Below, in pieces: positions 11,996 through 64,000 of a DNA stretch of 64,000 bases. A model generated the notes under the pieces. That model was not told where the DNA came from. It made no database searches and saw nothing but the letters and a program-made list of their open reading frames with translations. Origin of the DNA: Rhodosorus marinus CCMP1338 (taxonomy: Eukaryota > Plantae > Rhodophyta); assembly GCA_029953675.1 (NCBI GenBank), contig JAMWBK010000003.1, positions 3,289,002 to 3,353,001 on the forward strand. The letters run 5' to 3'. Made by a program: the position numbers and the translations under genes. Positions within the stretch are counted from its first letter, which is position 1. Every line of letters starts with the position of its first letter.

Positions 11996-12010
11996 GGTTA
12001 CGTTAGTCTG
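11996..12010 (+). repeat. Interstitial telomeric repeat remnant
   Basis: GGTTACGTTAGTCTG. Confidence 0.9.
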
Positions 12011-12070
12011 AGATTTTGGACGGCCATATTTGTGGAAAACAACGGTAAAAGTTTATAAGCAGTTACACGT

Positions 12071-22371: not shown

Positions 22372-22389
22372 AGTTCTAGTTGAGACGAT

Positions 22390-23990: not shown

Positions 23991-24064
23991 CTTTGAGACG
24001 ATTGCGTTTCTCACGTCCCCACATGATTTGATAAATCATTCAAGATGGAGTATGGCTTGTACAT

Positions 24065-26656: not shown

Positions 26657-26738
26657 GGTTACGTTAGTCTGGGGGTAGGATTAGACGTATTGTTGCGCTG
26701 CAGTAGGCAGCTGCCCAGTAAAGCTTACGGTTACGTTA
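26657..26738 (+). repeat. Interstitial telomere remnants (26657-26674, 26729-26738) flanking a 53-nt family A 3' UTR stub
   Basis: GGTTACGTTAGTCTGGGG, then TAGGATTAGACG...AGTAAAGCTTAC, then GGTTACGTTA. Confidence 0.9.
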
Positions 26739-33400: not shown

Positions 33401-34616
33401 CGTGAAGATGAAATCGAGAATGGTTCCAGCTACTAGAAGGTCTCCACGAGGAAGGACGACTGGGGGAATGCCCCCACGGAGGGGAAGCGAGCCTCCTTCC
33501 AAAGAAATCCACCGCCGGAGCCAACTCCGAAAACGCGTACGCCAAATGCCCCAGTCTCCGCCCTCCTTCAGGACATAACACTGTAGATCCATAGGCTGCG
33601 ACCTCGCAGCCGTGCCTGGAGCGCTAATCGTGCTTCTCCCCTTAGACCCGGGGAGTCGGTCCTCGCTCTCTTACCTCCTATCCGCACCAAAGTCGTGAGC
33701 CGCCCACTCCGCGAGGCTCGCGGAACGGATCCCGCGGGCTTCAGCAAAGTAACCTGGGCGTCCTCCACCGCCATGCCCTCAGTCTGCTCCCCTGCCTCAC
33801 CACTCTCGCTGGAAGTAGTGCTGGAAGCAGAGCCCTCCAAAATCCCCACCCGCTGCAGCTCTGTCTTGTAGCGCGAAGTCAGCACAAGTCGCCTCTCCAG
33901 ATCGAAGAAATTGGAAACCGCCATGCGCAGGTGACGAGGGCCCGACCGGAACCGCTCCAACAAGATCCTCTCAAGGCGCTGAATCCGTAGCCAATGGATC
34001 GCTGCCGCCTTCACGCTGCTCTCATGCTCAGAGAGCCCTGCCGTTTCTCCCGGAGACAGGAAATTGCCCGAGAAACGGTCAAAATCGAAGTGCAAAACCA
34101 CCTGCGGGTTGCAGCGCAGCCACCGGGCGCTCTCAGGCCACTGCTCGGTAGGCTTCGCCAGCAAGGCCTCCAGGTACTTGGCGGCGGTTGCGGAGACCAA
34201 AAAGCACATCGCGGCCCTCATAGTTTGCGAAGAAGAAATCACCCCGGCTGCACCCTAACGATTCCGCAAAAGTGTCCCGGAAGTCTCGCATAGACGGAAC
34301 CTGTCCTCGTGTAGTCTGGGGCCGGACATTTCGCACCCACAGAAATTGGAGAGTGGTCTCCACAGGTCCATCCTGAGGCTCGCGAGATGGTATGAAACGG
34401 AGCATAGCCGCCGTACGTGTGGCAGTGGTGCCCTTCCGCAAGACTGATGCGTACGAAGCGCCCCCCTTGCGGCCACCACGTGCCCCCGAAGTAGCCGGGA
34501 GCTGGTGACCACCTGAGGGCTGGTCCAAGAGAGGGAAGTCCACAGCTGCAGTCTCCTCCACACCGGTTGCCGCACAGTCACCACCACCATTGCCTCGAGT
34601 CCCCGAGCGCTGAAGC
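30473..34616 (-). mobile_element. Family C element: complete ORF2 plus the 3' half of ORF1
   Basis: 3' end TAAAGTCC at 30473-30480, ORF2 at 30521-33592, ORF1 fragments at 33568-34590. Confidence 0.92.
30521..33592 (-). CDS. Family C ORF2: RT + CCHC Zn knuckle + restriction-like endonuclease (1023 aa, open)
   Basis: CPGPSGLRTELL, RPIGMVE, QVGVGFSGGCE, DFRNAFN, GVQQGDPCGP, AYHDD, CQGC-X9-H-X4-C, IADLLVS...YVDLAI, KERRY. Confidence 0.92.
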   Translation of the reverse strand: MDLQCYVLKEGGDWGIWRTRFRSWLRRWISLEGGSLPLRGGIPPVVLPRGDLLVAGTILDFIFTSLARNIRDTVIWVFLGVMPRLILAPIHTSERRWRVRDRLALFLKGDFEVLQRSYLASSAPSACRTRHGTVSPVPARVQKLVAVGDLSRAARVLEGQAPVLPYDDSLAQTVSSLFPESDVDLSPEFEVFLDRPELARFRIDLTLSESDLEDLLRTSRRGRCPGPSGLRTELLQALSQPGQSALLRILNKLFQGVSGASAPWEHLRQAQLCLLTKPDHQPAHPRLRPIGMVESLRKLAGRWLCQRLRQRVTAFMAPLQVGVGFSGGCELITHGIELERASRPDWGVLVVDFRNAFNSVSRTHALEVLRRVFPEAWPFLSGIYGGESLPYLTTEGTVFQAHTGVQQGDPCGPLLHACALQLVLLRLSTEVSDLRICAYHDDVTLLGTPDTLARGLTAIEAIARRVGLTLETEKCRFLPPRDVSLNSLPPILRLISEREGFEHHGVGLGTDKFVQASCERVLARHKQLTDAIEHLPDSMLQSACLLSRFCAGPRLNYWLRSLPPAWGSWIAAKADEMTLQHWGTLLDEPLDLEAAPDRDLIRAQIALPLRLGGFGVADRGLVCSPAAVASWATALRTLVTFQMRSACLLARALTNEDPVTLPPPLLTIYDGLQHAFRKCNAVPDANRSRFRSWWELLWGRAEAIEDCPLDRVLADDGEASPGSPVADYPGLSRLWSSRTDVIQHSLTWGQHSAAHTVMLNSPLTPPTTAARLRGMGGHLSHLWLTTLPSSLSHRLDAFQFRSAARIYLGLPQAPWHSNRPSFCQGCESRIDACGYHFLGSCGLLRGLRTRRHTRLKYILSEFLTRIGHTVEVESELPRSISDSAPPRCIADLLVSDAAARRSTYVDLAITCPVASAHLTAAARRRGAAASALRRVKERRYAESMASLPCAEGRSHRFQPFIVESFGHVDKSGLEWLRKCFAEHPTEYLALLRRLSVSLWRYSSDMLSEARHRRLGLHTSLPSY

Positions 34617-34805
34617 GCTTCAGGCTATTTCTGGACTTTACTAGCTTTTTTTTTTTTTTTTTTTTAGTTCATCTTCACGCCTTGCGTAGCGCTTCAGGCT
34701 ATTTATAGCATAGCCTGAAGCGCTACGCAAGGCGTGAAGATGAACTAATAACTAGGGAGGGAAGTATGCAACCCCAGGCGCCGATGGCGCGCCTCGGAAA
34801 GCATA
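34617..34805. repeat. Cluster of C 3'-end fragments in alternating orientation, with a T-run and a 37-bp perfect inverted repeat
   Basis: AGTTCATCTTCACGCCTTGCGTAGCGCTTCAGGCTAT, then TTATAGC, then its reverse complement (~34666-34746). Confidence 0.85.
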
Positions 34806-35344
34806 TCCAAACTAGCTCGTCCTCCCTCCCCATCAATGACGCACACACAAGCATGCACCAAGATTTCTCTCGCAAGGACGTCATCTCATATGCCTCCGGA
34901 TAGTTATAAGATGACATGTAGAGATGGAATCATATCCGTGGGAAAAAGGGTCCTCTATAATAACATGCACGGTCAGTACTTCCGGGTACCTTTTTGGGAG
35001 ACGCAGCTGGCTCCGGCTAATAGGTACGACCACATAGCCTCACTGTAGAGACTTTTCTATGCGTGGAAAACGTGTTCCAACAGGTAAGTGACCAGTAATA
35101 CCCGAATACCTGTAATACTGAAAACGAAATCAGTTTCGGGGTTTTGCCTTTCGTGCTTTTCGAATTCGAGAAAACGACGCACTGTAAGGCCCGGCTAAAG
35201 ATGGAGTAATCGCCCTATGATGTGCAGCGGCGCTATGGGTTTACCACTCGAAGACAGGTGCGACCGAAAAATAGTGCCCAGAAGTATTGAACCACACGTA
35301 TCGGTATAGGGAAAGCACTCGTATTTTCTGAACAATTGTAGAAT

Positions 35345-35999
35345 GACGCTTGTGGCTACCACTTCCTGGGTTCCTGCGGACTGTTGAGAGGTCTCCGTAC
35401 GAGGCGTCACACTCGCCTCAAGTACATCCTCAGCGAATTTTTGACTCGGATAGGGCATACGGTTGAGGTTGAGTCGGAACTGCCCAGATCAATCTCGGAC
35501 TCTGCACCGCCCCGTTGTATAGCCGATCTCCTCGTCTCCGACGCTGCTGCCAGACGCTCAACATATGTGGACCTTGCGATTACCTGCCCCGTGGCCAGCG
35601 CCCACCTCACCGCAGCCGCCCGCCGCCGGGGCGCCGCGGCTTCAGCCCTTCGAAGAGTTAAGGAACGACGGTATGCTGAGAGCATGGCCAGTCTGCCTTG
35701 CGCTGAGGGTCGCTCTCACCGGTTCCAGCCATTCATTGTGGAAAGCTTTGGTCACGTCGATAAGTCGGGTTTAGAGTGGTTGCGGAAATGTTTTGCTGAG
35801 CATCCTACTGAATATTTGGCGCTCTTGAGGCGTTTAAGTGTCTCCCTTTGGCGATATTCCAGCGACATGCTTTCCGAGGCGCGCCATCGGCGCCTGGGGT
35901 TGCATACTTCCCTCCCTAGTTATTAGTTCATCTTCACGCCTTGCGTAGCGCTTCAGGCTATGCTACTAAAGTCCAGTAAAGTCAAGTAAAGTCCAGTCC
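35345..35999 (+). mobile_element. Family C, 5'-truncated copy with reiterated tail
   Basis: ORF 35384-35926 gives the same protein as the C-terminus of 30521-33592. It ends TAAAGTCC followed by AGTAAAGTCAAGTAAAGTCCAGTCC. Confidence 0.92.
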
Positions 36000-36266
36000 A
36001 GTTCATGGTTTGGTCTAGATGGAAGACGAGTTGTGACCTAGTCTAAGGTTCTAAATTGGCTCGAATGTAGTTGTAGTTAGGGAGACCACGTAGATGAAAG
36101 CGAAGGGACCCTTGTGAGCATCCGAGCGAGACCTACCAGAGGTTGGCCCGAAAGTACGTTGTGGGGGAAATTTCTGAACAGTTTTTTCCGGGAATAGACG
36201 GTAATGTCGGTAATAAGTTGCTGGTTGCGTTAAAAATCGGCTCTGCGCTAATATATCTATAGGAAC

Positions 36267-50266: not shown

Positions 50267-50959
50267 ATGACTACGTTTACCATACCCCCGCCCGAGGCTT
50301 ACGACGGCAAGCGGGATTTCGTCAAAATTCAGACGTTCGTAGCCTCACTGCGTGGCTACCTGAACTTCCATCACGCAGCAGACTCCGGCCGCCAGTCAGT
50401 CCAGTACGCGGGGCTGTTTTTGAGAGCCCAGGCCCAGGTCTGGTACCAGGGTCTTCGACAAGCGGCGGATGGCATCCCGGAGGCACTGGACTCCCTCGAA
50501 GACTTCGAACAGGCCCTGCGAGGACAGTTCGAGCCTCACGACCATATCGAGCGAGTCCGGGCCAAACTGCGCAGCGCTCGACAACGCGGCCCTGATGTCA
50601 CCCGTTACGTCGACTATCTGGATGAACTTTTCATGCAATTGGGCGAGTTCATCAGCGACTCTGAAAAGCTGGAGCGCTTTAAGGCGGGCTTGACTGGTCG
50701 TGAGCGAGACTTCGTCTATTATGGTCGACCCAAGACCTATGAAGAAGCGAAAGCCATCGCATTGAGCCTGGCGGGTGCCCACGAGATGCCGAAGGAAGCG
50801 ACGAAGGGATCCTCGGATCCACCAAGAAGCAAACCCCGCACAACGTCACCGCGCCGGCCCCACACGCGCAGCATGGGGTCACCGCCAACCTGCTACCAGT
50901 GTCAAGAGGTAGGACACTTTAAACAAGACTGCCCCCGGCGACTGGCGTATTTGCAGTGA
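50267..50959 (+). CDS. gag: Gypsy Gag with CCHC Zn knuckle
   Basis: PEAYDGKRD, retrotransposon gag-like helices, CYQCQEVGHFKQDC. Confidence 0.9.
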   Translation: MTTFTIPPPEAYDGKRDFVKIQTFVASLRGYLNFHHAADSGRQSVQYAGLFLRAQAQVWYQGLRQAADGIPEALDSLEDFEQALRGQFEPHDHIERVRAKLRSARQRGPDVTRYVDYLDELFMQLGEFISDSEKLERFKAGLTGRERDFVYYGRPKTYEEAKAIALSLAGAHEMPKEATKGSSDPPRSKPRTTSPRRPHTRSMGSPPTCYQCQEVGHFKQDCPRRLAYLQ

Positions 50960-51013
50960 GGTGACACGCTTATCGAGCCTACAGCAGGAAAACTAACGGA
51001 CTCCGGACGAGGG

Positions 51014-54000
51014 ATGCCGTCCGAGAGTCCAACGACCAGCATCCCAACCGTTGGGTTACAGCAACGGGGTAATGCAGGCCTAACTGCAATAGGCGTGGTA
51101 GCGGCGGAACCGGTGGAATGTCTCATCGACACCGGTGCGGTGACGGCAATTAGAGAGGACGTTGCGAAAGCCGCCAACCTACCGAGGTACGACGAGCCAC
51201 GGACATACGGGTTGGCTGTCGGTGAGGAGACCGTGATCAGCCCCGGAGTGACGGAGACAACGATCACACTCCAGGGACGACAATTCAAGACGAAGCTACG
51301 AATATTCAAGCATCTAAGCCACGATGTATACTTAGGTCTCGATTTCTTGAGGCAACATCGAATAACTGTCGATTGTAGCGCGGAACCCCCACAGCTGGTA
51401 CTGGGAGCGGAAGACACCAGCATGCGGGGAATAACAAGTATGGAGACGGAGGAAGAAATAGGGGAGAGGTCTGGCGCGGTCATCCGGGAAGGGAAAGGCC
51501 TAGAGAAAGGCGGAAAGGACCAGGTTGCTGACCCAGGAGAGAAGTTTGGTGCCGTCATCCGGAAAGAGTTTCCCCAAGTTTTCCAAGATACACTGCCGTT
51601 GCCACCGAAGAACCGGCAATTATATGCACTCAAAATCGAATTGGAACCATGGGCGAGTACACCAGCTCAACGCGCATATTCGATGTCACGGGTCGACCGA
51701 GAGCGGCTACAAGGAGAGTTGCACGACTTGGAAGAGCAAGGATTTATCTCACGGAGCAGAAGTCCGTATGCTGCACCTGTGTTGTACGTGGACAAAAAGG
51801 ACGGTGGGCGACGCCTCTGCATCGACTATCGCCGGTTGAACCAGATCACCGTGCGAGAAAGAACGACCCCGCCTAGAGTGGAGGAACTATTGGATACCCT
51901 GAGCACGCGCGGGTTTTCACAACGTTAGACCTCCGCTCGGGATATTGGCAGTTGCCAATTGAACAGGCATCACGCGAGAAGACGGCCTTTGTCACGTGCT
52001 TCGGACAATACCAGTGGAATGTCATGCCGTTTGGGTTGAAGAATGCGCCCTCGGCATTCATCCGCTACTTGACGGATGTATTATATGATCTTCTCAACCA
52101 GTGCGTGGTGTTATACGTTGACGACATTCTGGTATATTCCCCAGATGACACACAACACCAGGCCGATGTTCGAAAGGTGCTACGACGCCTCGAGCAGCAT
52201 CAGCTGATCGTCAAATATTCGAAGTGCGGTTTTGGATTACGCCAAGTTTGCTACCTAGGCCAAATCTTGGCGGGAGGCACTCGACGTCCCGATCCGGAAA
52301 AGGTCAAAGCAGTTCAGAATTGGAAGACGCCAACGACGGTTAAGGAGCTACGGGCCTTCATGGGTTTCGCGAACTTCTTGCGCCCCTTTGTACCACACTT
52401 TGCCCAGGTGGCGGCGCCCCTCCACAGGCTAACGAAGAAAGACCAAAAGTGGGGTTGGCAAGCGAACGAACAACAAGCCTTTGATGGGTTAAAGTCCGCC
52501 ATATCAGCAACCACCATGCTGTACATGGTTGATCCGATCCTCCCCTTCATCGTGCAGACGGACGCAAGCGACACCGGGGTGGGTGCTGTCCTATTCCAGA
52601 CCCGCCAGGATCGGGAGGTGCCCGTGGCGTATATGTCCCGATCCTTCAATAGCACCGAGAAACGCTACAGTACGTACGAGAAAGAACTCTACGCTATCGT
52701 CCTGGCCATCCGCGGGTGGTCCGTGTATCTTGATGGGCAACAGTTCACTGTGCGTACGGACCATAACCCGCTACGCTTCTTGCAAACACAGACGACATTA
52801 ACTCGTCGGCAGGCGCGGTACGTGAACATATTACTACCCTACTCCTTTGAGGTTCAATGCGTACGCGGCAAGATAAACGTCGCGGATGCACTGAGTCGCG
52901 ACGCACTACGAGCCAACCGCGTCACGATGGAAGCCGATTGGACTCCAGAGTACCAAGCTGATCCAGAATTCTGCACGCAATTTCGCAGCCCGGACCAGTT
53001 TGAGGGTTTCCAACGAAAAAAGGGTCTATTATTCCTCCATGCACGACTTTGCGTACCCGAACGCCGTGTTAATGAGGTCATCGATGGGCACCACCAGTCC
53101 CTAACGTCAGGCCATTTTGGCGCACAAGCTACTTACCGTGTGGTGCGACGACGCTATTACTGGCCCAGCATGAGGAAGGACATCTTCACGCGCGTCCAGC
53201 AATGCTCGGTTTGTGCACGAGAACAACCGCTGCGTCGGCATCAAGGGGAACTACAACCCCTCCCGATACCGGAACAGCGGGCCTCTGATTGGTCGGTGGA
53301 TTTCATCACTGCATTTCCCAACGTCGAGGGCTATGATGCCATTCTGGTGGTCGTTGACCGGCTTACGAAGTATGCCGTGTTCATCCCCACAACGAAGACG
53401 GTGACTGCAGAAGAGGTGGCAGCGCTAATCGTGAAGAATATTATCACGTGGTTCGGACTACCACGAAGCTTCGTCACTGATCGTGATAAGGTCTTTACCG
53501 CCACATTCTGGCGCCACCTAATGCGAATAATGGGGATTGACCACCTACTTTCGACGGCATATCACCCTGAAACGGATGGGCAAACAGAACGCGTCAATCA
53601 GACCCTCCAGATCATGCTGAGATGCTGTTGTACGAGCCACACTTGGGTACAGAGTTTACCCCTGCTTCAACTGGCGTATAATAATCATACTTCAGCGAGT
53701 ACCGGGTATTCACCATATTTCTTGTTAACAGGAGGGCACCCGCGGCTCAATTTGGACACCTCAACCCCTACTACTACGATTCATAATCTGGCCGATGCTG
53801 TTACTGCCTTTTCGCAACGTCAAGAACGAATCCTCGCTGACGCACGGAAATCTATGGCCCTGGCGCAAAAGTTATACACGGAACAAGCAAATTCACGACG
53901 TCATGCCAAAATCTTCAATATCGGAGACAACGTTTATTTGTCAACGCGGAATCTCTCACTGGAGGGCCCAACCCGCTTCCAACCTCGATGGTTGGGCCCG

Positions 54001-54366
54001 TTTCCCGTGATCGAGAAACACTCTGATGTGGCATACACTCTGCAATTACCGGATGAAATGCGGATACATCCGACATTTCACGTTTCCTTGCTAAAAGGTG
54101 CCCCTACGTGTCCTCCGAATTCTCCGATACGGAGTATCCCTCTCCAATCGGATCTCTATTCAACGTTACCGATCCTGTCGGTATTGGGAGTCCGCCATGC
54201 GGCTACCGGTGTCCGACAGTTCCTATGTTATCGCGAAAACGAATCCTACTCTGATGCGACTTGGATAACCGAGCCGGACTACCCCACCGATCTACAATCT
54301 CGACGACGCTTACGACACTACCTCAATTATCGCAAGGCGCTTGACGCGCTACCTTCAACTTCTTGA
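51014..54366 (+). pseudogene. pol: Gypsy Pol (protease-RT-RNaseH-integrase-GPY/F-chromodomain-like) with a 1-bp frameshift near 51908
   Basis: LIDTGA, SPYAAPVL, CIDYRRLN, YVDDIL, QTDASD, integrase HHCC and DDE, WLGPF...HPTFHVSLLK, and ATWITE. Adding one G at ~51908 restores TARVFTTLDLRSGYWQ. Confidence 0.9.
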
Positions 54367-54413: not shown

Positions 54414-55069
54414 TCAGCCCCCTTGGCCGTACGAGATGGGTTCGTCGTGCCCTCTCTGCTCTCAGACTGAAGACAACGCAGATTTTGGCGCCCACCTGCT
54501 CGCTAGTTGCCCGGCGGTGAAAGGTGCTCGAACCCGCCGCCACACACGGATCTTGAACCTGTTATACCGGGAACTTCGGCCTATAGTCCGGCAAGCCGGT
54601 CTGGAAATCGAACGTGAGAAACCTTTACCCGTCGCGGACTTTCAAAATGATGAACGCCGTGTAGCCGACCTGGTGATCACCTGTGACGACAGCCGCCGTA
54701 CCACATACGTTGATCTTGCTGTTCCTAACCCTCAAGCTAGTCGTTATCTCCCGGCTGCGGGGGAGCGCCGTGGATCTGCCGCCGCCAGCATGAGACGCCG
54801 CAAAGAGATCAAATACGCGGGGGCTTTGTCTTCCCCTGGTGTTCGTGCTTCGGCACTAGCACATCGCTTGGTACCCCTGATCATTGAGTGCTTTGGGTTC
54901 ATGGACTCTGTTGGTTCTCGCTGGCTTCGGGAGTTGTTCCGCGAACGCCCTGACCGTCTTCAATTGTTGTTTACCCGCTTAAGTTTCCTGCTGTGGCGCA
55001 TGAATGCCGCTTTGATGTTGGAGGCGCGAGTACTTCGCCGCGCTTAGTCTTTTTTTCCCCTCGGGGTTT
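54414..55069 (+). mobile_element. Family D fragment, truncated at both ends
   Basis: ORF 54436-55047 is near-identical to the end of 19611-20540. The 3' UTR stops at CTCGGGGTTT. Confidence 0.92.
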
Positions 55070-55099
55070 ACGTTAGTCTGGGGTTACGTTAGTCTGGGG
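55063..55099 (+). repeat. Interstitial telomere (about 2.3 units)
   Basis: GGGGTTTACGTTAGTCT GGGGTTACGTTAGTCT GGGG. Confidence 0.92.
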
Positions 55100-55100
55100 G

Positions 55101-55596
55101 TGACATTCTAGCCCGACACCCACGAACAGGCAAGCTCTACGTGATCGATGTGAAGGTGACCTCGCCTTTGCAAAGAACACACCTCCACAAAGCGTCTTGG
55201 GAGACCGGGTATGCGGCACGGAAAGCGGAAAAGTTTAAAGAGTCCAAATACCGTGACAGTATCGGAGAACATAACGACGACATCTTCGTCCCCTTCTGCC
55301 TGGAAACATTTGGGCAGATGGGACAACAAGCGAGTGAGTTCCTCAAGGAAGCGACTATACACCTGGATCAGCGGGCAACGCAAGTAAGTGAGGCTCGGGC
55401 GATCTTGAACCGCACTTTGTGGAAAGGAAACGCTATCCTTGCCACCCAGGCACGTCGTGTCGACGAAGCAGACTATGACATCGTCCCTATCTTAGAACGT
55501 AGCCACACAACCCATTAGGGGTTTCTTTGCTGACCAATAGGATCCTTATTGCTTCTTAATGGGCTCCAATAGGGAGTTCTTCAGTAAAGTGTACGC
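55101..55596 (+). mobile_element. Family B, 5'-truncated copy (RLE + 3' UTR)
   Basis: Appears identical to 59983-60478. Confidence 0.92.
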
Positions 55597-55658
55597 GGTT
55601 ACGTTAGTCTGGGGTCATTGAGGGTTTGTTAGTCTGGGGTTGACGTTAGTCTGGGGTT
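55597..55658 (+). repeat. Telomere remnant plus variant repeats
   Basis: One exact unit, then TCATTGAGGGTTT-GTTAGTCTGGGG-TTGACGTTAGTCTGGGGTT. Confidence 0.85.
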
Positions 55659-55726
55659 GGACTTTGGAGTTTATCGTGGTGATAAAGTTACACTTTCATT
55701 CTTTCTACGAACGCTTATCGAGTGAT

Positions 55727-57112
55727 ATGACTACTCTCGAGCCCGTGCCTCCGGATGGGGGGGGCTTTTGCACAGACGCAACGATGGAAGACCTCCCGGC
55801 CGTTAGCCTGAGGGCAGACGGACCCGAGCCTCTGCCCGTACCTGTTTCTGAGCCTACAACTGCATCTGCACTTGACAACGACGTACCTACTCCCTTGGCT
55901 ATTGACCTGAGCTGCGGAGCGCTGAAGCTGCATCTCGACGCGCCCAAGCATAAGACCCCGCTCTACAATGGGCTTATGCTGCGGTTTATGGGTCTCTTAG
56001 CCCAGGCACACGCCAATGGCACCGAGGCTCAACTCCTTCACAATCTGACTACGACGCCACACAAAGCTGCCCCGAGGGCACAACGCCCCCTCCCTGTCTA
56101 CGAACCAGCAAACTACGCCACTGCAGCAGCCCGCCCGCGATCTCCCGAGACACGTGATCTCGATTCCAATGCATTCCCAGATCTCGCAACGGCCAATGAG
56201 CAAGCACGGACAAGGACTCGAGCTCAACCTCAACCAATGAGCTGGACGACACGTGTCCGCGCCAACCAGACCCCAGCAGCTGCCAATCGCTCGTTTTTCG
56301 CGAGCATTCATGGGCTGCAGTACCAGAGCCAGAAGGACGTTGATGCATTTGTGCTACTCAATGCTCGACCTCGGGACTCCACCAGAAGCAAGGCCCATCA
56401 TGCTTGGGATATCGAGCGCCTAGCCGGCCTTCAGAAAAATTCGCTGCTCCAGCTGGACTACTTTGATCATCATGTACACGTCATCGCTCATCATACCGCC
56501 TTCCAACTACTCCGCGACGCTACCAACGCAGGGGCCTTCGAACCCACCAGAGGAGCACACCTGCCTCCTGATCAACGTATCCAAGCTGTCAAGCTCTCTC
56601 CAACGTCACACGAATACCTGAGCATGAGGGAAAAGCTCCGTCACCAACCGGCAGACTATCCCCGCGCTGCACTGATCCACAACCTGCTCCGCTACCGACG
56701 GATCCAGCGGATTGTTACAAATCGCAGGAGTCTCCCACCCAACAACCGAGAGGCACTCCTGGGCCACGTCAGGGCCGAGCTCGATCGCACCCTGGCCAGC
56801 CTCCACGCTCACGCTCAACGAGCACCCGACAGTTGCCTGCGCGTGCCATTCTCCGACCCTGAGCTTCCAGAGCACTCGACAACAACCGAGCGCAGAGAGC
56901 CACGCTCTCTGGACCGAACCCGGGTAGCTGACCCTCAACCGGCGGCACTGGAGAGGGAGAGTGCGGAACCCCTCGCAGCGACTACGCATAGCGCTGATTC
57001 TGCCCAAGTCCCAGCCGCTCGGGAGGACAACACGCCTGAGACGCCTGCCGCGACAGCCCGTGATCCACTAGACTCGGAGCCTGACCCTCCACCACTAGCG
57101 ATCAACCAGTGA
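55727..57112 (+). CDS. Family B ORF1 (first ATG at 55727)
   Basis: Long open frame. The segment VLLNARP...LQLDYFDHHVHVIAHHTAFQLL aligns by eye with A and C ORF1. Confidence 0.8.
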   Translation: MTTLEPVPPDGGGFCTDATMEDLPAVSLRADGPEPLPVPVSEPTTASALDNDVPTPLAIDLSCGALKLHLDAPKHKTPLYNGLMLRFMGLLAQAHANGTEAQLLHNLTTTPHKAAPRAQRPLPVYEPANYATAAARPRSPETRDLDSNAFPDLATANEQARTRTRAQPQPMSWTTRVRANQTPAAANRSFFASIHGLQYQSQKDVDAFVLLNARPRDSTRSKAHHAWDIERLAGLQKNSLLQLDYFDHHVHVIAHHTAFQLLRDATNAGAFEPTRGAHLPPDQRIQAVKLSPTSHEYLSMREKLRHQPADYPRAALIHNLLRYRRIQRIVTNRRSLPPNNREALLGHVRAELDRTLASLHAHAQRAPDSCLRVPFSDPELPEHSTTTERREPRSLDRTRVADPQPAALERESAEPLAATTHSADSAQVPAAREDNTPETPAATARDPLDSEPDPPPLAINQ

Positions 57113-57242
57113 CCCCTGCAGAGCCGATGCAAGGACTTTCGACGGCCCAAGACAAGAGACAAGTGGCTCCACCCACTAAGCGCCCTAAGCCTGCCAACGC
57201 CGTCGACGACCTCACGCCCGACTCCCTCTCGTCGACTCAATC

Positions 57243-59921
57243 ATGAGCAGCTCCTCAGACGAATATACTCCGAACCGCTCTCGCTCATCCCGCCGTGCTC
57301 GTGCTCGTCGCCAACGACCTCCCACTTCGACGCAGTCACTCTTCGAGACCGACTCGAACGCCTGGCTCTCGTCTCTGCACGACTTCACTCTCAACGTAAC
57401 CGATAATGGCAACCGCTGGTGGCAGCTGACTCAGGCTCCGACGCCTACTCGCCAATTCGTCCCCGATAACCTGAAAACACGCTGGAACCATCTCATGTCG
57501 AAAGCCCTGGAACTTGCCCTTGATACGTCAGCGCCGAACCTGTCACGCCTGTTCATCTTCGCTCTCCCCAGTCTCGCACTCGGCTACACAGGCGACCTGG
57601 CCCCTTCTGCGCAGATGCTCGCCGTTATGGACGGAAGGTTCTCCACGGTGTGGGAACACCTTACTGCTCACAGCAAAACCCTTGACACCAACTGTATCGT
57701 ACCTCCGCCGCCTCAGACCCGCCACCGACAGAAACGAGCCCTACAACTCGCCAAAGCTCAACGTATGTCCCAGTCTAGCCAACTCCTACTGGCCACCGAT
57801 CTTGCCTCGAAGACTCCTGCCACCTGGCGCGTTCTGACTACGCTCTTCCCTGAGTACGAGGCCGCAACGCTCTCCTCGGAGCTTGAAGACGCCCTACAGG
57901 CAAAGCTCAACGGACTGCAACGCAATATATGGGACCCGACTTTGGCCTCTGACGAGAGCCTCCTGTCAACGCTGGAACACCTACCGTACGCCACAGCCCC
58001 CGGGCCGAGTGGACTCAAAGCCGAACATCTGCGAAGTCTCACCATGACAACGCAACCGGTACTTGTACGCTTCCTTCGCAAGCTTGCCACCACTCCGGAG
58101 AGCTTCCCTGACGTGTTTCTCGAAGCCATGCGCAGCAACCGACTCCTCGCGAAAGACAAGCGAACGTCTGCCGAAGCTAGACAAGGGTACCCTCTTCGCC
58201 TACGCCCGCTAGGGATTCCTGAGGTACTGCGGAAGGCCGTCACCCAATGGACACTTCGCGCTGTCGCCACGCCCCTTCGCGACTTTCTGCTCCCGGAACA
58301 ACTCGGCATCTCGGTCAGCGGCGGCTGCGAACACGCCATCCACCTCGCGGAAGCCCACCTCGCAGCGCGCCCGAATGACGTGCTCCTCAAACTTGATCTC
58401 GCAAACGCGTTCAACAGAATCGACCGACGCCTCGCAAACCGTATCATCGAGCTAGCTTTCCCCGAATTGAAGTCGCTTATGACAATGAGCTACGGACCAC
58501 GAGGCGAGAGCGCCCCACGCCAATTCGGATGGCGAGACAGCGATGTCGATGACTGGCTCCAGCTCCGAGCCTGGACTGGAGTCCAACAAGGCGATCCGTT
58601 GGGACCTGCTTTACACGCGCTCGCCCTTTCCCCACTCCTACGAGCACTACGAGACCGGTTTCCGAGGATCACCCTTAGCGCAATCCACGACGACCTCACC
58701 TTACTTGGCCCTCTGAAGGACGTGAAAGAAGCGCTACACTGGAGCGAGCACCACCTCCCCGAAATAGGCGCACAACTTCAAAGGACGAAATGCGAGCTTT
58801 TTGGACTCCAACTGCCGACGACCAGACTCGTCAACAGGGAAATTCCCGACGTACATGTCACCCGGGACGGAATCCAACTTTATTCCATCCCTATTGGCAC
58901 ACGGACCTACGTCCAAGACGCGAACAGGAAGCTACAACGAGAACATGAAAAACTCGTCCAAGAGGTCATCCGTCTACCGACCACTGAGCTACCAATTAAA
59001 CTGTGCCTATTCCGCTACTGCGCAGGACCGCGTCTAGACTTTGCTCTACGCACGCTCGCCCTACAATACGGAGCCAATCTCGCACGCGAAGCCGATCGCA
59101 TCTCGCTCCTGGAACTCGACAAACTGTGCGGCTCGCTCCTCGAAGGCCAGGGCCTCACAGGACCCGCAAAAGACGTGGTCGAAGCGCAGATCCAGCTCCC
59201 TTGCCGATGGGGTGGCGCAGGCCTAGCGATGAGAACACGAATACAACCCCTCGCCTTCTTCAGCAGTTGGCGACAGACTCTGAAGCTCAATTGGACTGGA
59301 TCTAGCCACCTAGGAGCGCTACTCGATGCCTGCACATCGACGAACCTGACCGAGCACCATCACATTCGACCCCTGCTCCACTCGACGGATCAACTTGGAG
59401 CACAACTAATCGAAGCGAGCCTCCACTCAAAACGCTGCCTGGCACGAGGAACACCGGCCCCCATACTCCGCCTAACAGAATGGCAATCGTTGGAGAGCCA
59501 AGAACAAGCAGAGAACCCGCACACACCACCCGACAGGCCCTTGATCGGTTCAACCCAAAAACTCCTCTCCAACTGGAGTCACCGACGGGCATTCGAGGAA
59601 ATGGTGGAGAACGCGGAGATCAGCGAGACGGCACGTGCGCGAATACGCTCCTGCAAGGGATCAGGAGGGGGTACTTGGCTGCGAGACTTGCCAAGGAAAC
59701 ACGGACGCGGCCTAAGTAGCGGAGAACTGAACCTGAGCCTTCGACAACTGTTGGGATTACCCCTGCCGGGTGTACGAATACTTGGTACGTGTACGATATG
59801 TTCCCAACCACACGACGCTGCAGGCATTCAACGCCTTCACCACTGCACCAGCTCTACCGGCAGTTGGACAATTCGGCATAACATGGTCAGGGACGCCCTG
59901 GCGACAGTGCTGGGGACGTAA
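57243..59921 (+). CDS. Family B ORF2: RT + variant Zn knuckle
   Basis: APGPSGLKAEHL, RPLGIPEVLRK, QLGISVSGGCE, DLANAFN, GVQQGDPLGP, AIHDD, CTIC...HHC. Confidence 0.92.
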   Translation: MSSSSDEYTPNRSRSSRRARARRQRPPTSTQSLFETDSNAWLSSLHDFTLNVTDNGNRWWQLTQAPTPTRQFVPDNLKTRWNHLMSKALELALDTSAPNLSRLFIFALPSLALGYTGDLAPSAQMLAVMDGRFSTVWEHLTAHSKTLDTNCIVPPPPQTRHRQKRALQLAKAQRMSQSSQLLLATDLASKTPATWRVLTTLFPEYEAATLSSELEDALQAKLNGLQRNIWDPTLASDESLLSTLEHLPYATAPGPSGLKAEHLRSLTMTTQPVLVRFLRKLATTPESFPDVFLEAMRSNRLLAKDKRTSAEARQGYPLRLRPLGIPEVLRKAVTQWTLRAVATPLRDFLLPEQLGISVSGGCEHAIHLAEAHLAARPNDVLLKLDLANAFNRIDRRLANRIIELAFPELKSLMTMSYGPRGESAPRQFGWRDSDVDDWLQLRAWTGVQQGDPLGPALHALALSPLLRALRDRFPRITLSAIHDDLTLLGPLKDVKEALHWSEHHLPEIGAQLQRTKCELFGLQLPTTRLVNREIPDVHVTRDGIQLYSIPIGTRTYVQDANRKLQREHEKLVQEVIRLPTTELPIKLCLFRYCAGPRLDFALRTLALQYGANLAREADRISLLELDKLCGSLLEGQGLTGPAKDVVEAQIQLPCRWGGAGLAMRTRIQPLAFFSSWRQTLKLNWTGSSHLGALLDACTSTNLTEHHHIRPLLHSTDQLGAQLIEASLHSKRCLARGTPAPILRLTEWQSLESQEQAENPHTPPDRPLIGSTQKLLSNWSHRRAFEEMVENAEISETARARIRSCKGSGGGTWLRDLPRKHGRGLSSGELNLSLRQLLGLPLPGVRILGTCTICSQPHDAAGIQRLHHCTSSTGSWTIRHNMVRDALATVLGT

Positions 59922-59935
59922 CCCCATGACTAGAA

Positions 59936-60400
59936 GTGACAATAGAACCGACCGGACACTACCAAGGCAGTCGGCTTCGGCCTGACATTCTAGCCCGACA
60001 CCCACGAACAGGCAAGCTCTACGTGATCGATGTGAAGGTGACCTCGCCTTTGCAAAGAACACACCTCCACAAAGCGTCTTGGGAGACCGGGTATGCGGCA
60101 CGGAAAGCGGAAAAGTTTAAAGAGTCCAAATACCGTGACAGTATCGGAGAACATAACGACGACATCTTCGTCCCCTTCTGCCTGGAAACATTTGGGCAGA
60201 TGGGACAACAAGCGAGTGAGTTCCTCAAGGAAGCGACTATACACCTGGATCAGCGGGCAACGCAAGTAAGTGAGGCTCGGGCGATCTTGAACCGCACTTT
60301 GTGGAAAGGAAACGCTATCCTTGCCACCCAGGCACGTCGTGTCGACGAAGCAGACTATGACATCGTCCCTATCTTAGAACGTAGCCACACAACCCATTAG
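59936..60400 (+). CDS. Family B restriction-like endonuclease domain, out of frame with the RT
   Basis: RPDILARH...YVIDVKV...KAEKFKESKY...FVPFCLETFG. Confidence 0.88.
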   Translation: MTIEPTGHYQGSRLRPDILARHPRTGKLYVIDVKVTSPLQRTHLHKASWETGYAARKAEKFKESKYRDSIGEHNDDIFVPFCLETFGQMGQQASEFLKEATIHLDQRATQVSEARAILNRTLWKGNAILATQARRVDEADYDIVPILERSHTTH

Positions 60401-60478
60401 GGGTTTCTTTGCTGACCAATAGGATCCTTATTGCTTCTTAATGGGCTCCAATAGGGAGTTCTTCAGTAAAGTGTACGC

Positions 60479-60924
60479 GGTTACGTTAGTCTGCCCAATA
60501 AAGCTCACGGTTACGTTAGTCTGGGGTTAGTCTGGGGTTACGTTAGTCTGGGGTAAAGAGGCGATGAGTGTGGAAAAGCCCGAGGAGAAGTTCATCCCGA
60601 TCGCGATAGAGACCTTTGGGCGGAGCGGGAGGTTGACGCAAGACTTTTTGCGGGACAGTTGTAAACACTTGTTGCATCGAGATGAGGAGCTGAGGGATGC
60701 ACGATCCCAGTTAAACAGGATCCTATGGCAGGGCAACGCGGCGATTGCGCTTGGCGCTCTACGTGCGGACCAGTTGGAGAACCCACTGGTTCCTGTTTTT
60801 TCTTTTGAACGTAGCATGAGACCCCGGTAGCGGGGTTGTTGTGAGTGATTCCCTAGATAGCAATCGGCTTAGTGTTACGTCGCATTAGGCGACTGCCCAA
60901 TAAAGCTCACGGTTACGTTAGTCT
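60479..60924 (+). mobile_element. Array: telomere 60479-60493 / 15-nt A stub 60494-60508 / telomere 60509-60554 / 5'-truncated A 60555-60910 / telomere 60911-60924
   Basis: Both A pieces end AATAAAGCTCAC|GGTTAC. 60555-60910 appears identical to 63220-63575. Confidence 0.92.
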
Positions 60925-63575
60925 AGCCCCGCCAGTGTGGATTCACCGGTGGAGATTGTGGAAGCCCTCCAAGGCCTACTCACGACGGCCCACGACACAC
61001 TGAAGAGGCGGTGGGATCCAAAAACGGCTGCCGACGAAGGCCTCCTCTCAATCGTGGCACGACTACCTCAAGGGACGAGCCCTGGACCGAGTGGAATGCG
61101 CGCGGAACATTTGCAAGGGGCGAACCAACAGACTCAGGTAGCACTGATTCGGGTCTTGCGCCAACTCGCCACCGCGCCCGGGCGATTCTCACCCCTTCTG
61201 CTACGAGCCTTGCGTAGCAGTAGACTTCTGCCTTTCTCGAAGCCAGCACAGGGGGGTAACTCCCAGGCCAAGGCAGGGATCCGCCCAATAGGCGTGCCGG
61301 AGGTCCTACGCAAAGTGGCAACTCAGTGGGCGCTGCGAGCGGTGATGGACCGGGTCCGCGAGCTGTTGGTGCCGTTGCAGCTGGGAATCGGGGTCAGCGG
61401 TGGCTGTGAACGGTCACTGCACGCCATCCAGGCCCACCTGTCATGTGAACCAGACTCGGTTGCACTTCGACTGGACCTCGAGAACGCCTTTAACCGCATT
61501 GACAGGCGAATTGCCAAGAAACTGGTGGCCCAGCACTTCCCTGAGCTCACAGCGGTGTATAGGCTCGGATATGGAGGCGATGGGGAAACACCGACGCTTT
61601 GTGGATGGCGGACGACGCAAGAAGACAACCACCTGCACAAGGACAGACTGACGCTGCAAGCAGAAACCGGAGTACAACAAGGCGACCCTTTAGGTCCGGT
61701 GCTACATGCGCTCTCCCTGGCCCCTTTTCTCAAGGCACTCAGCAACAAGTTTCAGGGAGTCACGATCGTCGCCATCCATGACGACATCACTCTGGTCGGC
61801 GCATTGCCTATATTGAAGGAGGCTCTCCAATGGGGACAGACCCTGCTACCGTGCCTTGGAGCCCGCCTGCAGCTCAGCAAATGCAGCCTTTATGGTCGAT
61901 CCCTCACCACTACACGCTTGGTGAACCGTGCGATTCCCGGCGTTCAAGTGACTAGGGAAGGCCTCACAATCCACTCCATCCCCATCGGCACTCGGCAGTA
62001 CATCGAGCACGAGTGTAGACGGCTGCAGAACAAACACGAGACGCTGTTCAAGGAGATTTCGAGCCTGCCAACCGATGAACTGCCTATCCAGCTTGCGCTT
62101 TACAGGTATTGCGCTGAAACGAGGTTGGATTACACCTTGCGATGCCTTGCCTACCCGTTTGGACGAGCTCTGGCCAGGGAAGCGGACAGTATGAGCAGAT
62201 ACCACTTAGAGGTCTTGTTTGGTGGCCTCTGCACGACGGCCTTGGTCGAGGATGAGCTGATACACCCGGTCAACGAGCAGATTTCGTTGCCCTGCCGATG
62301 GGGCGGATTGGGGTTCGCGACCCGTGCAAGAATACAGCCGATTGCGTTCTTCTCGGCCTGGGCGCAGACCCTGAGAGACCATGCGGGTCAGTGGCCCTAT
62401 ATAACGGAGGTGGAGCGACAGGTCAGGCAAGGTGGCGACATACACATCAGCCACTTAGGCCGACTGCAGGTGTCAACGGAGACGATCGGTGAGCAAATCC
62501 GCGCGTCTAGTCGTGCTATAGAGCGGAGACTGTGCCCAGACACGGCGCCGCGGATCCGGAGACTGGCCAAGCTGCCCGAATTGAGAGACGAAGCCGCACC
62601 TGAAGTAGCGGACTCCCCTCGCGATTGGAACCATGGTTCAATACAACAAACCCTCTCTAGGGAGGCACACCATCGCGCGTTCCAACGTTTGGTCGGCAAC
62701 GAGGGCGTTTCGCATGAACACCGTGCAAGAATCCGATCGGCGGCCGGCTCGGGTTCGGGGGTATGGCTGCGGGAACTACCGTTGCTAGAGCCGAGAAAGC
62801 TGGACTCACAGGAATTGCAGGTAAATGTTCGACAACTGCTGGGGCTGCCGATTCCGGGGTTGCGGACAACGGAGCAGTGCACCAGTTGCCGTAGGAAACA
62901 TGGCCCAAATGGGGTGCAACGATTTCAACACTGTCCAACATCGACGGGACTATGGCAGAGACGGCACGACGAGCTCTGTACGGAGCTAGGGAGATGGCTC
63001 AACCGATGGAATTTTCTTGACATACAGCAAGAACCGCAGAGGTATTTTGAGAATTACCAGCTGCGACCAGATATCGTGGCGACCCATCCAAAGACCTTTC
63101 AAAAGTACGCGATCGATGTGACGGTGATTTCACCGCTACAGGAAAAGTACATAAGGCGTGGCAGTGCAGAAAACGGGTATGCAGCGAAACTGGCGGAGAA
63201 CTACAAGCTCGCGCACTATAAAGAGGCGATGAGTGTGGAAAAGCCCGAGGAGAAGTTCATCCCGATCGCGATAGAGACCTTTGGGCGGAGCGGGAGGTTG
63301 ACGCAAGACTTTTTGCGGGACAGTTGTAAACACTTGTTGCATCGAGATGAGGAGCTGAGGGATGCACGATCCCAGTTAAACAGGATCCTATGGCAGGGCA
63401 ACGCGGCGATTGCGCTTGGCGCTCTACGTGCGGACCAGTTGGAGAACCCACTGGTTCCTGTTTTTTCTTTTGAACGTAGCATGAGACCCCGGTAGCGGGG
63501 TTGTTGTGAGTGATTCCCTAGATAGCAATCGGCTTAGTGTTACGTCGCATTAGGCGACTGCCCAATAAAGCTCAC
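60925..63575 (+). mobile_element. Terminal family A element, 5'-truncated, directly abutting the telomere
   Basis: Open RT-Zn-RLE frame, then an 80-nt 3' UTR, then the telomere. Confidence 0.95.
60937..63495 (+). CDS. Family A ORF2 (RT + variant Zn knuckle + RLE), N-terminally truncated but otherwise open
   Basis: SPGPSGMRAEHL, RPIGVPE, DLENAFN, GVQQGDPLGP, AIHDD, CTSC...QHC, RPDIVATHP...YAIDVTV, FIPIAIETFG. Confidence 0.93.
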   Translation: MDSPVEIVEALQGLLTTAHDTLKRRWDPKTAADEGLLSIVARLPQGTSPGPSGMRAEHLQGANQQTQVALIRVLRQLATAPGRFSPLLLRALRSSRLLPFSKPAQGGNSQAKAGIRPIGVPEVLRKVATQWALRAVMDRVRELLVPLQLGIGVSGGCERSLHAIQAHLSCEPDSVALRLDLENAFNRIDRRIAKKLVAQHFPELTAVYRLGYGGDGETPTLCGWRTTQEDNHLHKDRLTLQAETGVQQGDPLGPVLHALSLAPFLKALSNKFQGVTIVAIHDDITLVGALPILKEALQWGQTLLPCLGARLQLSKCSLYGRSLTTTRLVNRAIPGVQVTREGLTIHSIPIGTRQYIEHECRRLQNKHETLFKEISSLPTDELPIQLALYRYCAETRLDYTLRCLAYPFGRALAREADSMSRYHLEVLFGGLCTTALVEDELIHPVNEQISLPCRWGGLGFATRARIQPIAFFSAWAQTLRDHAGQWPYITEVERQVRQGGDIHISHLGRLQVSTETIGEQIRASSRAIERRLCPDTAPRIRRLAKLPELRDEAAPEVADSPRDWNHGSIQQTLSREAHHRAFQRLVGNEGVSHEHRARIRSAAGSGSGVWLRELPLLEPRKLDSQELQVNVRQLLGLPIPGLRTTEQCTSCRRKHGPNGVQRFQHCPTSTGLWQRRHDELCTELGRWLNRWNFLDIQQEPQRYFENYQLRPDIVATHPKTFQKYAIDVTVISPLQEKYIRRGSAENGYAAKLAENYKLAHYKEAMSVEKPEEKFIPIAIETFGRSGRLTQDFLRDSCKHLLHRDEELRDARSQLNRILWQGNAAIALGALRADQLENPLVPVFSFERSMRPR

Positions 63576-64000
63576 GGTTACGTTAGTCTGGGGTTACGTT
63601 AGTCTGGGGTTACGTTAGTCTGGGGTTACGTTAGTCTGGGGTTACGTTAGTCTGGGGTTACGTTAGTCTGGGGTTACGTTAGTCTGGGGTTACGTTAGTC
63701 TGGGGTTACGTTAGTCTGGGGTTACGTTAGTCTGGGGTTACGTTAGTCTGGGGTTACGTTAGTCTGGGGTTACGTTAGTCTGGGGTTACGTTAGTCTGGG
63801 GTTACGTTAGTCTGGGGTTACGTTAGTCTGGGGTTACGTTAGTCTGGGGTTACGTTAGTCTGGGGTTACGTTAGTCTGGGGTTACGTTAGTCTGGGGTTA
63901 CGTTAGTCTGGGGTTACGTTAGTCTGGGGTTACGTTAGTCTGGGGTTACGTTAGTCTGGGGTTACGTTAGTCTGGGGTTACGTTAGTCTGGGGTTACGTT
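63576..64000 (+). repeat. Telomere, (GGGGTTACGTTAGTCT)n, about 26.5 perfect units
   Basis: Homogeneous 16-nt G-rich tandem array running off the window end. Confidence 0.95.

Follow-up and report, generated by a model that had tools for sequence, protein, structure and literature searches.

The DNA analysed here is a 64,000-nt stretch of contig JAMWBK010000003.1 of the red alga Rhodosorus marinus CCMP1338 (class Stylonematophyceae), hereafter the window, whose base 64000 corresponds to base 3,353,001 of the contig and is the true contig end. The distal 9 kb of the window carry copies of two retrotransposon families without long terminal repeats (non-LTR), A and B, which were defined by self-comparison of the window and which are separated by tracts of a 16-nt telomere repeat, GGGGTTACGTTAGTCT. 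An earlier note, made from the letters of this stretch alone, had proposed that two such lineages insert at one fixed phase of the repeat and build the chromosome end. Two chromosome ends were read for the present analysis, namely that of the window (contig 3) and a region termed L045, which lies 24 to 2 kb from the end of contig 7 and was found through the annotated B-like reverse transcriptase (RT) NDN08_004844. The distal features of the window are as follows.

54487-55068, plus strand: 3′ part of a family D element, a distant long interspersed nuclear element (LINE) with a restriction-like endonuclease (RLE), comprising the RLE domain and the start of the 3′ untranslated region (UTR); 27% identical to B residues 659-829 by tblastn
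55063-55100, plus strand: 38-nt telomere tract of about 2.3 units, one T being additional
55101-55596, plus strand: family A 3′ fragment of 496 nt, 5′-truncated, tail motif present, ending ...AGTAAAGTGTACGC; 100% identical to 59983-60478
55597-55659, plus strand: telomere tract of 63 nt, one canonical unit followed by the variants GGGGTCATTGAGGGTTTGTTAGTCT, GGGGTTGACGTTAGTCT and GGGGTTG, adjoining the full-length A 5′ end
55660-60478, plus strand: full-length family A copy of 4819 nt, 5′ boundary provisional
55727-57112, plus strand: A open reading frame 1 (ORF1), 461 aa, no known domain
57243-59921, plus strand: A ORF2 (RT)
59936-60400, plus strand: A RLE part
60401-60478, plus strand: A 3′ UTR
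60479-60494, plus strand: telomere tract of 15-16 nt, one unit
60495-60508, plus strand: family B tail alone, 14-17 nt, CCCAATAAAGCTCAC, its CTG being common to the upstream repeat
60509-60553, plus strand: telomere tract of 45 nt with one short variant unit, GGGGTTAGTCT
60554-60910, plus strand: family B 3′ fragment of 357 nt, 5′-truncated; 100% identical to 63219-63575
60911-60926, plus strand: telomere tract of 14-16 nt
60927-63575, plus strand: family B copy of 2649 nt, 5′-truncated at about ORF2 residue 205, ending ...GACTGCCCAATAAAGCTCAC
60937-63495, plus strand: open B ORF with RT, CCHC and RLE parts
63576-64000, plus strand: terminal array of the telomere repeat, GGTTACGTTAGTCTGG in 26.6 perfect copies, G-rich strand oriented 5′ to 3′ to the contig end

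The terminal array spans 425 bp, and its 16-nt unit has a chance expectation of 0 in the window. It was most likely made by a telomerase with a long template; long perfect repeat units are normal for yeast telomerases. A search of the available library of papers for the repeat in any rotation and on both strands returned chance primer matches only, a 20-mer of the repeat found 0 matches in a metagenome scan, and an Rfam scan of the window gave no match. The telomeres of rhodophytes outside the Cyanidiophyceae were described in a 2013 survey as 'recalcitrant to standard analysis' (PMC3622300), and the R. marinus genome paper reports telomeres on twelve contigs, its main text giving neither a telomere sequence nor retrotransposons (PMC10250338). 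Two isolated pieces of the repeat also occur far from the chromosome end and may be relics of old telomere tracts: a 13-nt piece, TACGTTAGTCTGG, at 534-522 on the minus strand (chance about 0.03), some 430 bp upstream of an SdhB-like ORF at 963-1643, and a 12-nt piece, GGGGTTACGTTA, at 23509-23498 on the minus strand (chance about 0.12).

All five distal copies of the window point with their 3′ ends toward the tip, so that the orientation described in the earlier note was borne out (5/5), as was a distal 9 kb made of such copies. The tracts between them measure 38, 63, 16, 45 and 16 nt; the short spacing reported before thus stands, but its range is 1-4 repeats instead of 1-3, and some of the units are variant. 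As no second full-length A copy is available in the window for comparison, the 5′ boundary given for A is provisional. Judged against its intact relatives L002 and P0152, the reading frame of A is broken at about 59905-59940, between RT and RLE, by either two frameshifts or one frameshift and a TGA codon, and part of this damage may be consensus error at a G run in the Nanopore-based assembly. On the plus strand the sequence at the break is ACGTAACCCCA, which matches 11 nt of the C-strand repeat; chance alone would supply about 0.5 11-mers of this kind in the window, and the match may be a coincidence. The long B copy has neither ORF1 nor the N-terminus of ORF2, and the B tail alone at 60495-60508 looks like an aborted insertion.

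The junctions at the 3′ ends of the elements were found to share a single register. The tails of the A, B and B-like elements read TAGGCRRCKGCCCARTAAAG and GAGTTCTTCAGTAAAGTGTACGC, and searches of the window with the tail motif retrieved two family A tails, seven long B-type tails and one B tail of 14-17 nt. GGTTACG was read directly after the tails ending at 55596, 60478, 60508, 60910, 63575 and 11995; the tail ending at 26728 is followed by GGTTACGTTA, the tail ending at 11606 by GATTACG, with one mismatch, and the tail at 9823 on the minus strand by GGTTAGT only, while a degenerate tail at 17514-17533 has no recognisable repeat downstream. With the junction marked by a slash, the tally comprised eight exact cases of ...C/GGTTACG, one with one mismatch, one partial and one degenerate without repeat. 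The chance of one register of 16 in the eight exact junctions is (1/16)^7 = 3.7e-9; all of the 3′ junction coordinates given in the earlier note proved correct, and the fixed register that it had claimed was likewise upheld (P of about 4e-9 for the eight exact cases). Most A/B copies are 5′-truncated, in agreement with the frequent truncation claimed before (lengths 14-4819 nt), and the copies of 14, 357, 496, 2649 and 4819 nt have one common 3′ end and telomere repeat on both flanks. In particular, the tail-only insert at 60495-60508 shows that synthesis begins exactly at the last base of the element.

The 5′ junctions turned out to be far less scattered than had been thought. In the window and L045 taken together, the upstream tract ends in GTCT(AG) at 60926, in GTCTG at 60493 (where CTG is common to the B tail) and 12010, in GTCTGG at 48307 on the minus strand, in GTCTGGGG(G) at 55099 and 26674, in GTCTGGGGT at 60554, 11625, L045 8739 and L045 21439, in GGGGTT(G) at 55659, in GGGGTTA at L045 20934 and in GGTTACGTTA at 26738, the last being the sole 5′ junction far from GG^GG. 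Consequently 12 of the 13 lie within -2 to +5 nt of GG^GG (binomial 0.0017 for a fixed window of 8 of 16 positions, or about 0.03 when the choice of window is allowed for), and the varied phases previously ascribed to these junctions were not recovered, since all but one adjoin the inferred nick. The commonest tract end is GGGGT, seen 4 times; microhomology of 1-3 nt is frequent, and additional bases likewise make some joins less sharp. This cluster fits a second-strand cut a few nucleotides from the first, the modal GGGGT^T giving a 3-nt GGT duplication, and it is better evidence for cleavage at the GGGG block than the 3′ register is. Degenerate repeat units were present just upstream of full-length 5′ ends, at 55615-55659 for A and at L045 20903-20934 for a B-like element.

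Two further observations concern 5′ joining. An inverted C-strand snippet, AACCCCAGACT, lies at L045 21440-21450 between a G-strand tract and a 5′-truncated A copy, which suggests a template switch onto the other target strand. In addition, the long B copy (60925-60945) and the downstream copy in L002 (4119-4140), a JGI transcript contig from a different strain or species, have the same start, ...GTCT(AG)CCCCG..., at about residue 205; rather than random truncation, this common start may reflect a hotspot of truncation or a defined 5′ end inside the element.

The repeat also follows broken, 3′-truncated elements at five junctions, and these served as an internal control. At 55068 the D element is cut inside its 3′ UTR at ...CCCCTCGGGGTTT and continued by ACGTTAGTCT with GGGGTT as microhomology, whereas in the intact D copies at 19.6 and 22.4 kb this UTR continues with TGTTTCAGCC. 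At 48323 on the minus strand an N-terminal piece of an A-like ORF2 ends in ...GGCGGAGG before TTACG; at 26656 a D 5′ piece ends in ...GCTGCG before TT and GGTTACG; at L045 21411 a B-like 5′ piece terminates in ...GGGAGC before TTAGTCTGGGG; and at L045 20868 the junction reads ...AAGTAC/CTGGGGTTACG. In these cases the repeat stands mostly in other registers, with G/T microhomology at 55068 and 48323. Healing therefore occurs at these chromosome ends, distinct from the tail junctions, and the broken-element junctions look like de novo telomere addition by telomerase. The distinction that the earlier note had drawn between insertion and telomerase healing of arbitrary breaks accordingly held at the loci on both chromosome ends, the tail junctions being unlike the healed ones. 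The unit at 26657 was considered as the mark of a third tail type or an intact tail and was rejected, as the sequence upstream is a truncated D piece.

The second chromosome end displayed the same organisation. In L045 a B-like tail is followed by the repeat and then by a 5′-truncated B-like copy; further on come a healed break, a B-like 5′ piece behind variant repeats and a second healed break. Thereafter an A copy, 99.7% identical to that of the window and having another 5′ truncation point, stands behind a repeat tract and points to the chromosome end, and by its length it should end about 500 bp before the contig end. The distal copies of L045 are oriented 3′ toward the tip, as in the window. 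Identities of 100% and 99.7% between copies argue for recent activity, and active master copies must be present elsewhere.

As for the encoded proteins, the Pfam RVT_1 profile matched A ORF2 at E = 5e-13 and B at E = 4e-9, and the nearest solved structures to the RT were R2 and LINE-1 ORF2p. A C-terminal motif, CX2C...HC-X9-RH(D/N)-X21-E-X10-RPD-X14-D(V)(K/T)V, was common to A, B, L002 and relatives. When an RLE profile built from eight relatives was searched against all PDB sequences, the sole significant match was the CCHC/RLE region of R2 (E = 2.6e-4), which a single-sequence search also matched; a CCHC motif and a PD-(D/E)XK endonuclease thus lie C-terminal to the RT. On these sequence matches A and B are classed as RLE-bearing non-LTR retrotransposons of the R2/CRE super-group, and the earlier description of them as two-ORF RLE-type elements is confirmed by the RVT_1 match, the R2-RLE profile match and the presence of ORF1 and ORF2. 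An N-terminal zinc-finger DNA-binding motif upstream of the RT is typical of the CRE clade; none was found there in A or B, the N-terminus of A ORF2 showed no visible Cys/His cluster, and a Pfam search at E ≤ 1 of ORF1 and the ORF2 N-termini found no DNA-binding or other domain. Full-length B-like ORF1s comprise 270-361 aa and share with A ORF1 only a marginal common motif (BLASTP E = 0.017). The B-like ORF1s at 12071-13156 and 27604-28416 have a conserved ...DFIASHACLLCHPDAIPILQSAISRGVF... core with an H-x-C-x2-C-H pattern, and A ORF1 is histidine-rich there; this core possibly forms a metal-binding module and offers the sole hint of a nucleic-acid-binding part. The label 'CRE-like' is indirect, as it comes from RepeatModeler labels and one match named 'SLACS reverse transcriptase' (Diplonema), the identity of A and B to any named relative being 30% or less.

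The two families are related to each other. They are 47% identical over ORF2 and lack poly(A); the 3′ ends of A, B, the B-like copies and L002 have in common a 5-bp hairpin that lies 15-20 nt before the terminus and has the loop A-N-T-A-G (92.5% of cells paired as against 17-67% in slid controls; compensatory changes in 3 pairs), and an A(A/G)TAAAG motif is present in A, B and the B-like copies 6-9 nt before the terminus. Given this ORF2 identity, the common hairpin and the common motif, A and B are sister families, and their shared target was most simply inherited from a common ancestor rather than reached by convergence. Of the earlier claim that two distinct lineages share one cut site, the shared site is therefore retained, whereas the separateness was overstated.

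We consider it probable (about 0.8) that A, B and the older B-like subfamilies are sister two-ORF RLE elements that parasitise the 16-nt telomere repeat through target-primed reverse transcription. In the element, the sense strand is the G-strand, and the element stops at ...C, where the repeat resumes with GGTTACG. Because of this strand assignment, and because the 3′ ends of the C-strand point toward the centromere, the C-strand must prime from an internal nick. In the proposed mechanism, the RLE would nick the C-strand at or near 5′-...TAACC^CCAG-3′, opposite GG^GG, and the distal C-strand 3′-OH would prime cDNA synthesis at a defined RNA 3′ end; priming could be aided if the RNA continues past the AAUAAA-like motif into telomeric sequence to which the primer anneals, and the conserved 3′ hairpin would position the RT. 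The G-strand would be cut about 3 nt further on (GGGGT^T), leaving small duplications or deletions, and microhomology would shape the 5′ joins. Read-through RNA does exist, since L002 extends past a tail and into the copy that follows it; this transcript and the AAUAAA-like signal near the end suggest that A/B RNAs carry some telomeric sequence. The history of the end would then have begun with the D break at 55068, capped by the repeat, beyond which five A/B events stacked outward, so that the last 9 kb were probably built by repeated insertions beyond a telomerase-healed break. The role in end maintenance that the earlier note had envisaged found no support: the copies enter inside a tract, broken ends are capped by the repeat and a 425-bp array stands at the tip. 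Since their orientation places insertion inside the tract, the copies are unable to extend the chromosome 3′ end, and the elements appear as tenants of the telomere, not its maintainers.

Several points weigh against this interpretation. Neither distal copy is autonomous, since the frame of A is interrupted between its RT and RLE parts and the 5′ third is absent from the long B copy, and the Pfam searches found no DNA-binding domain to account for target recognition. The tracts are mostly 1-4 units long, which is unlike random insertion into a 26-unit array and requires an added assumption, either that long interstitial tracts are lost or that insertion favours the first repeat adjoining non-telomeric DNA; in arrays of MoTeR, the telomeric elements of Magnaporthe oryzae, stability is limited to tracts of at most two TTAGGG units (PMC7367193). 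The fixed 3′ register may be partly inherited through read-through RNA annealing in register, and because such RNA could carry the register, the register alone does not prove a nick at GG^GG; the exact position of the C-strand nick is one that we infer. In L002, moreover, just AGTCT stands between the tail and the next copy. Finally, the genome holds 2.8 Mb of LINE/CRE sequence against the two ends read, and non-telomeric A/B copies may exist.

Telomerase healing of arbitrarily broken elements, with the arrays as remnants of breakage and capping, might be invoked for all of the junctions, given that truncated D-type, A-like and B-like pieces were indeed capped at 55068, 48323 (minus strand), 26656 and L045 21411. 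This explanation is highly improbable. In ten independent copies the conserved tail stops at one and the same nucleotide and the repeat beyond it takes up a single register, and the last base of the element, C, has no homology to the repeat; alignment of ...CAC or ...ACGC by AC or ACG would give ...ACGTTAGTCT and not ...C/GGTTACG. The healed junctions, in contrast, stand in other registers, and the 14-nt tail-only insert is no product of a break. A view in which recombination (break-induced replication, D-loop extension or unequal exchange between interstitial tracts) accounts for most of the stacking, transposition being rare or extinct, is unlikely, although the stacked copies show 100% identity, neither long copy is autonomous, the interior contains an inversion and a fold-back, and such array dynamics are known for MoTeR and for Cnl1 of Cryptococcus (PMC7367193; bioRxiv 10.1101/2021.08.11.455996). 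The 5′ truncation differs in each copy (496, 4819, 14, 357 and 2649 nt, with another on contig 7), as do tract lengths and variant repeats, which is as expected from independent target-primed events, and the fixed join of tail to repeat cannot originate by recombination.

Two other explanations assign the elements a part in making the end itself. Addition to the G-overhang in the manner of HeT-A/TART of Drosophila or of endonuclease-minus Penelope-like elements, by which the elements would extend and maintain the end, is contradicted by the orientation and scarcely credible: the elements are the outermost non-repeat DNA at two chromosome ends, but G-strand priming puts the element 3′ end centromere-ward whereas every distal copy faces the tip, an RLE domain is present and a perfect 425-bp array caps the end. 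According to the other, the 16-nt repeats are 3′ tail repeats of the elements, produced by reiterative copying of the RNA 3′ end by their own RT, so that the elements make the telomere. D, which ends in 1-3 tandem TAAAGTCCAG units, does point to tail reiteration in related elements, and every A/B copy has at least a partial unit on its 3′ side. We regard this as very unlikely, since broken ends without an A/B tail were also capped and the array has 26.6 perfect units, the typical G-strand polarity and a GGGGTTA core; under telomerase synthesis, a conventional telomerase RNA would be expected to carry a AGACTAACGTAACCCC-type template. The corresponding proposal, that the RT of the elements makes or seeds the 16-nt repeat and that retrotransposons are the end-maintenance machinery of this red alga, is to be given equally little credence; if true, it would represent a living intermediate between telomerase and Drosophila-type telomeres.

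Older B-like copies with 72-78% nucleotide identity to B are distributed over the interior of the window, at 9.8-12, 17.3, 26.7-30.5, 37 and 48 kb, and the interior copies are partly inverted. The corresponding features are as follows.

9823-11057, minus strand: older B-like 3′ fragment, tail followed by GGTTAGT
11080-11606 and 11626-11995, plus strand: older B-like 3′ fragments
11607-11625 and 11996-12010: repeat units in the older B-like block
12011-13156, plus strand: 5′ part (5′ UTR and ORF1) of a full-length B-like element, beginning directly after ...GTCTG
26657-26674, plus strand: repeat unit behind a truncated D piece
26675-26728, plus strand: B-like tail of 54 nt, followed by GGTTACGTTA at 26729-26738
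to 30494, plus strand: B-like element with ORF1 at 27604-28416 and ORF2 at 28416-30494, its 3′ side cut off at a D element
48776-48322, minus strand: N-terminal piece of an A-like ORF2, 3′-truncated
48322-48307, minus strand: one repeat unit behind the 3′-truncated A-like element
48303-47886, minus strand: B-like RLE part, 5′-truncated

Within the first of these blocks, a fold-back at 10674-11387 places B-like ORF2 residues of about 468-600 on the minus strand against residues 469-572 on the plus strand, with its centre near 11068, and adjoins a 19-nt tandem repeat of 1.9 copies at 11048-11084. It looks like an inverted duplication produced by break repair in an old block of telomere and elements. 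Family D copies were located at 30475-34618 and 19632-24004, both on the minus strand, at 35341-36001, and at L045 12186-16940 and 19067-19743; they are 26-30% identical to A and B at the amino-acid level and end in ...GCTA(G/C)TAAAGTCCAG, with 1-3 tandem TAAAGTCCAG units. 5′-truncated D 3′ fragments stand head to tail behind full copies with no telomere repeat between them, and the target of D appears to be its own tail or a related sequence, not the telomere. A Ty3/gypsy LTR retrotransposon with gag, protease, RT-RNase H and integrase occupies 50267-54366 on the plus strand, immediately on the proximal side of the truncated D element and of the distal A/B stack. Among the subtelomeric repeats there is also an ORF of 459 aa at 14583-15962 on the plus strand in which calcium-binding nonapeptide repeats of the RTX type form six stretches (Pfam HemolysinCabind, E = 1e-33), which is unusual as a eukaryotic nuclear gene.

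With regard to the genome as a whole, LINE/CRE elements were reported to account for 4036 pieces in R. marinus, that is, 2.82 Mb of the 2.89 Mb of LINEs and 9.04% of the 31.2-Mb genome (PMC10250338 supplementary files 8, 9), and RepeatModeler distinguished 24 LINE/CRE families, two of them young (471 and 370 kb, about 1% divergence; PMC10250338 supplement). The present findings suggest that much of the 9% LINE/CRE fraction is subtelomere built in the same way, by telomere insertion. An exhaustive representative search revealed few close relatives of A and B (at least 45% identity), all of them from transcript assemblies of MMETSP and JGI; more distant matches, at most 35% identical, came from dinoflagellates, sponges, Closterium, Porphyridium and Diplonema and offered no clade anchor. 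Relatives in Porphyridium purpureum (L043) and in a GC-rich metagenome contig (L003) had no recognisable telomere context, and in L046 and L047, which share their JGI transcript sample with L002, a B-like 3′ region is fused to other sequence with no repeat. A metagenome scan for the B tail returned 39 matches, all by chance in unrelated contigs. No record was found when the exact proteins of A ORF1, A ORF2 and the D ORF were looked up, and a homologue search with the B-like ORF1 retrieved the contig 7 copy and one short Logan contig only.

The repeat GGGGTTACGTTAGTCT provides a concrete 16-nt sequence for the chromosome end of a stylonematophycean alga. Owing to the length of the unit, each insertion and each healing event has a readable register, which is mostly invisible in telomeres of 5-8 nt, and the register tells transposition from telomerase healing within one locus. 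The system is therefore a clean natural readout of first- and second-strand cleavage by an RLE retrotransposon, a class that is used for site-specific gene insertion.

Compared with known systems, the protein architecture of A and B is that of R2 and of the R2/R4/NeSL/HERO/CRE group of RLE elements, in which the RT is followed by a CCHC motif and a PD-(D/E)XK endonuclease. As in R2, insertion is site-specific into a multicopy target, with a precise 3′ and a ragged 5′ junction and a second-strand cut a few base pairs off; the RT similarity to R2 is, however, very low (26 bits), the R2 target is rDNA and not the telomere, A and B have two ORFs, and no N-terminal zinc-finger or Myb domain was detected in them. 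SLACS and CZAR likewise have two ORFs. The spacing of the RLE motif in A and B fits the consensus quoted for CRE1/CRE2, SLACS and CZAR (PMC12857005), whose target, unlike theirs, is the trypanosomatid spliced leader. In HeT-A/TART/TAHRE of Drosophila, too, retrotransposons make up the chromosome end, but these elements replace telomerase, attach to the terminus with poly(A) centromere-ward and need no endonuclease; the opposite orientation, the lack of poly(A) and the 425-bp array at the tip set A and B apart from them.

Closer parallels are offered by telomere-repeat-specific elements. SART1 and TRAS1 of Bombyx mori are LINEs that cleave the telomere repeat at a fixed position, and the 3′ end of SART1 is followed by G-strand repeats, with features of its 3′ UTR and read-through sequence starting reverse transcription precisely. 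A and B have the polarity of SART1, whereas the Bombyx elements have an apurinic/apyrimidinic (AP)-type endonuclease, belong to the R1 clade and carry poly(A) tails. Cnl1 of Cryptococcus neoformans / deneoformans is a CRE-group element that forms subtelomeric arrays of 5-80 kb at nearly all ends, with up to hundreds of copies (bioRxiv 10.1101/2021.08.11.455996), and in this respect is comparable with R. marinus and its 2.8 Mb of LINE/CRE sequence; it also inserts into genes, and its host belongs to another kingdom. The most similar organisation is that of MoTeR1/MoTeR2 of M. oryzae and FoTeR of Fusarium oxysporum, which are RLE non-LTR elements without poly(A) located in telomere repeats (PMC7367193, PMC12857005). 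Like A and B, they form head-to-tail stacks with very short tracts between the copies and variant telomere-like repeats at full-length 5′ ends, and their chromosome ends are remodelled when interstitial tracts break and are healed. They differ in that their 5′ end is nearest the tip, their sense strand is the C-strand TAACCC and TAACCC lies on both flanks, and they have one ORF and a 6-nt unit that hides the register, compared with two ORFs and a 16-nt unit that shows it. With G-strand sense and two ORFs, A and B thus fall outside the MoTeR/FoTeR family proper; the hosts are fungi on one side and a red alga on the other, with no close sequence relationship demonstrated.

The earlier statement that no description of such a system was known hence applies in part: telomere-specific RLE elements are known in fungi (MoTeR, FoTeR, Cnl1), while the R. 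marinus paper gives its LINE/CRE elements in a supplementary table with no word on a telomere connection. Telomere targeting is known from fungi and the silkworm and has not been reported in red algae. What is new here are the host phylum, a 16-nt target that exposes both cleavage registers, the combination of SART-like polarity with an RLE and the side-by-side contrast with healing, and telomere-targeting RLE elements are thereby extended from fungi to the Archaeplastida, with the opposite polarity.

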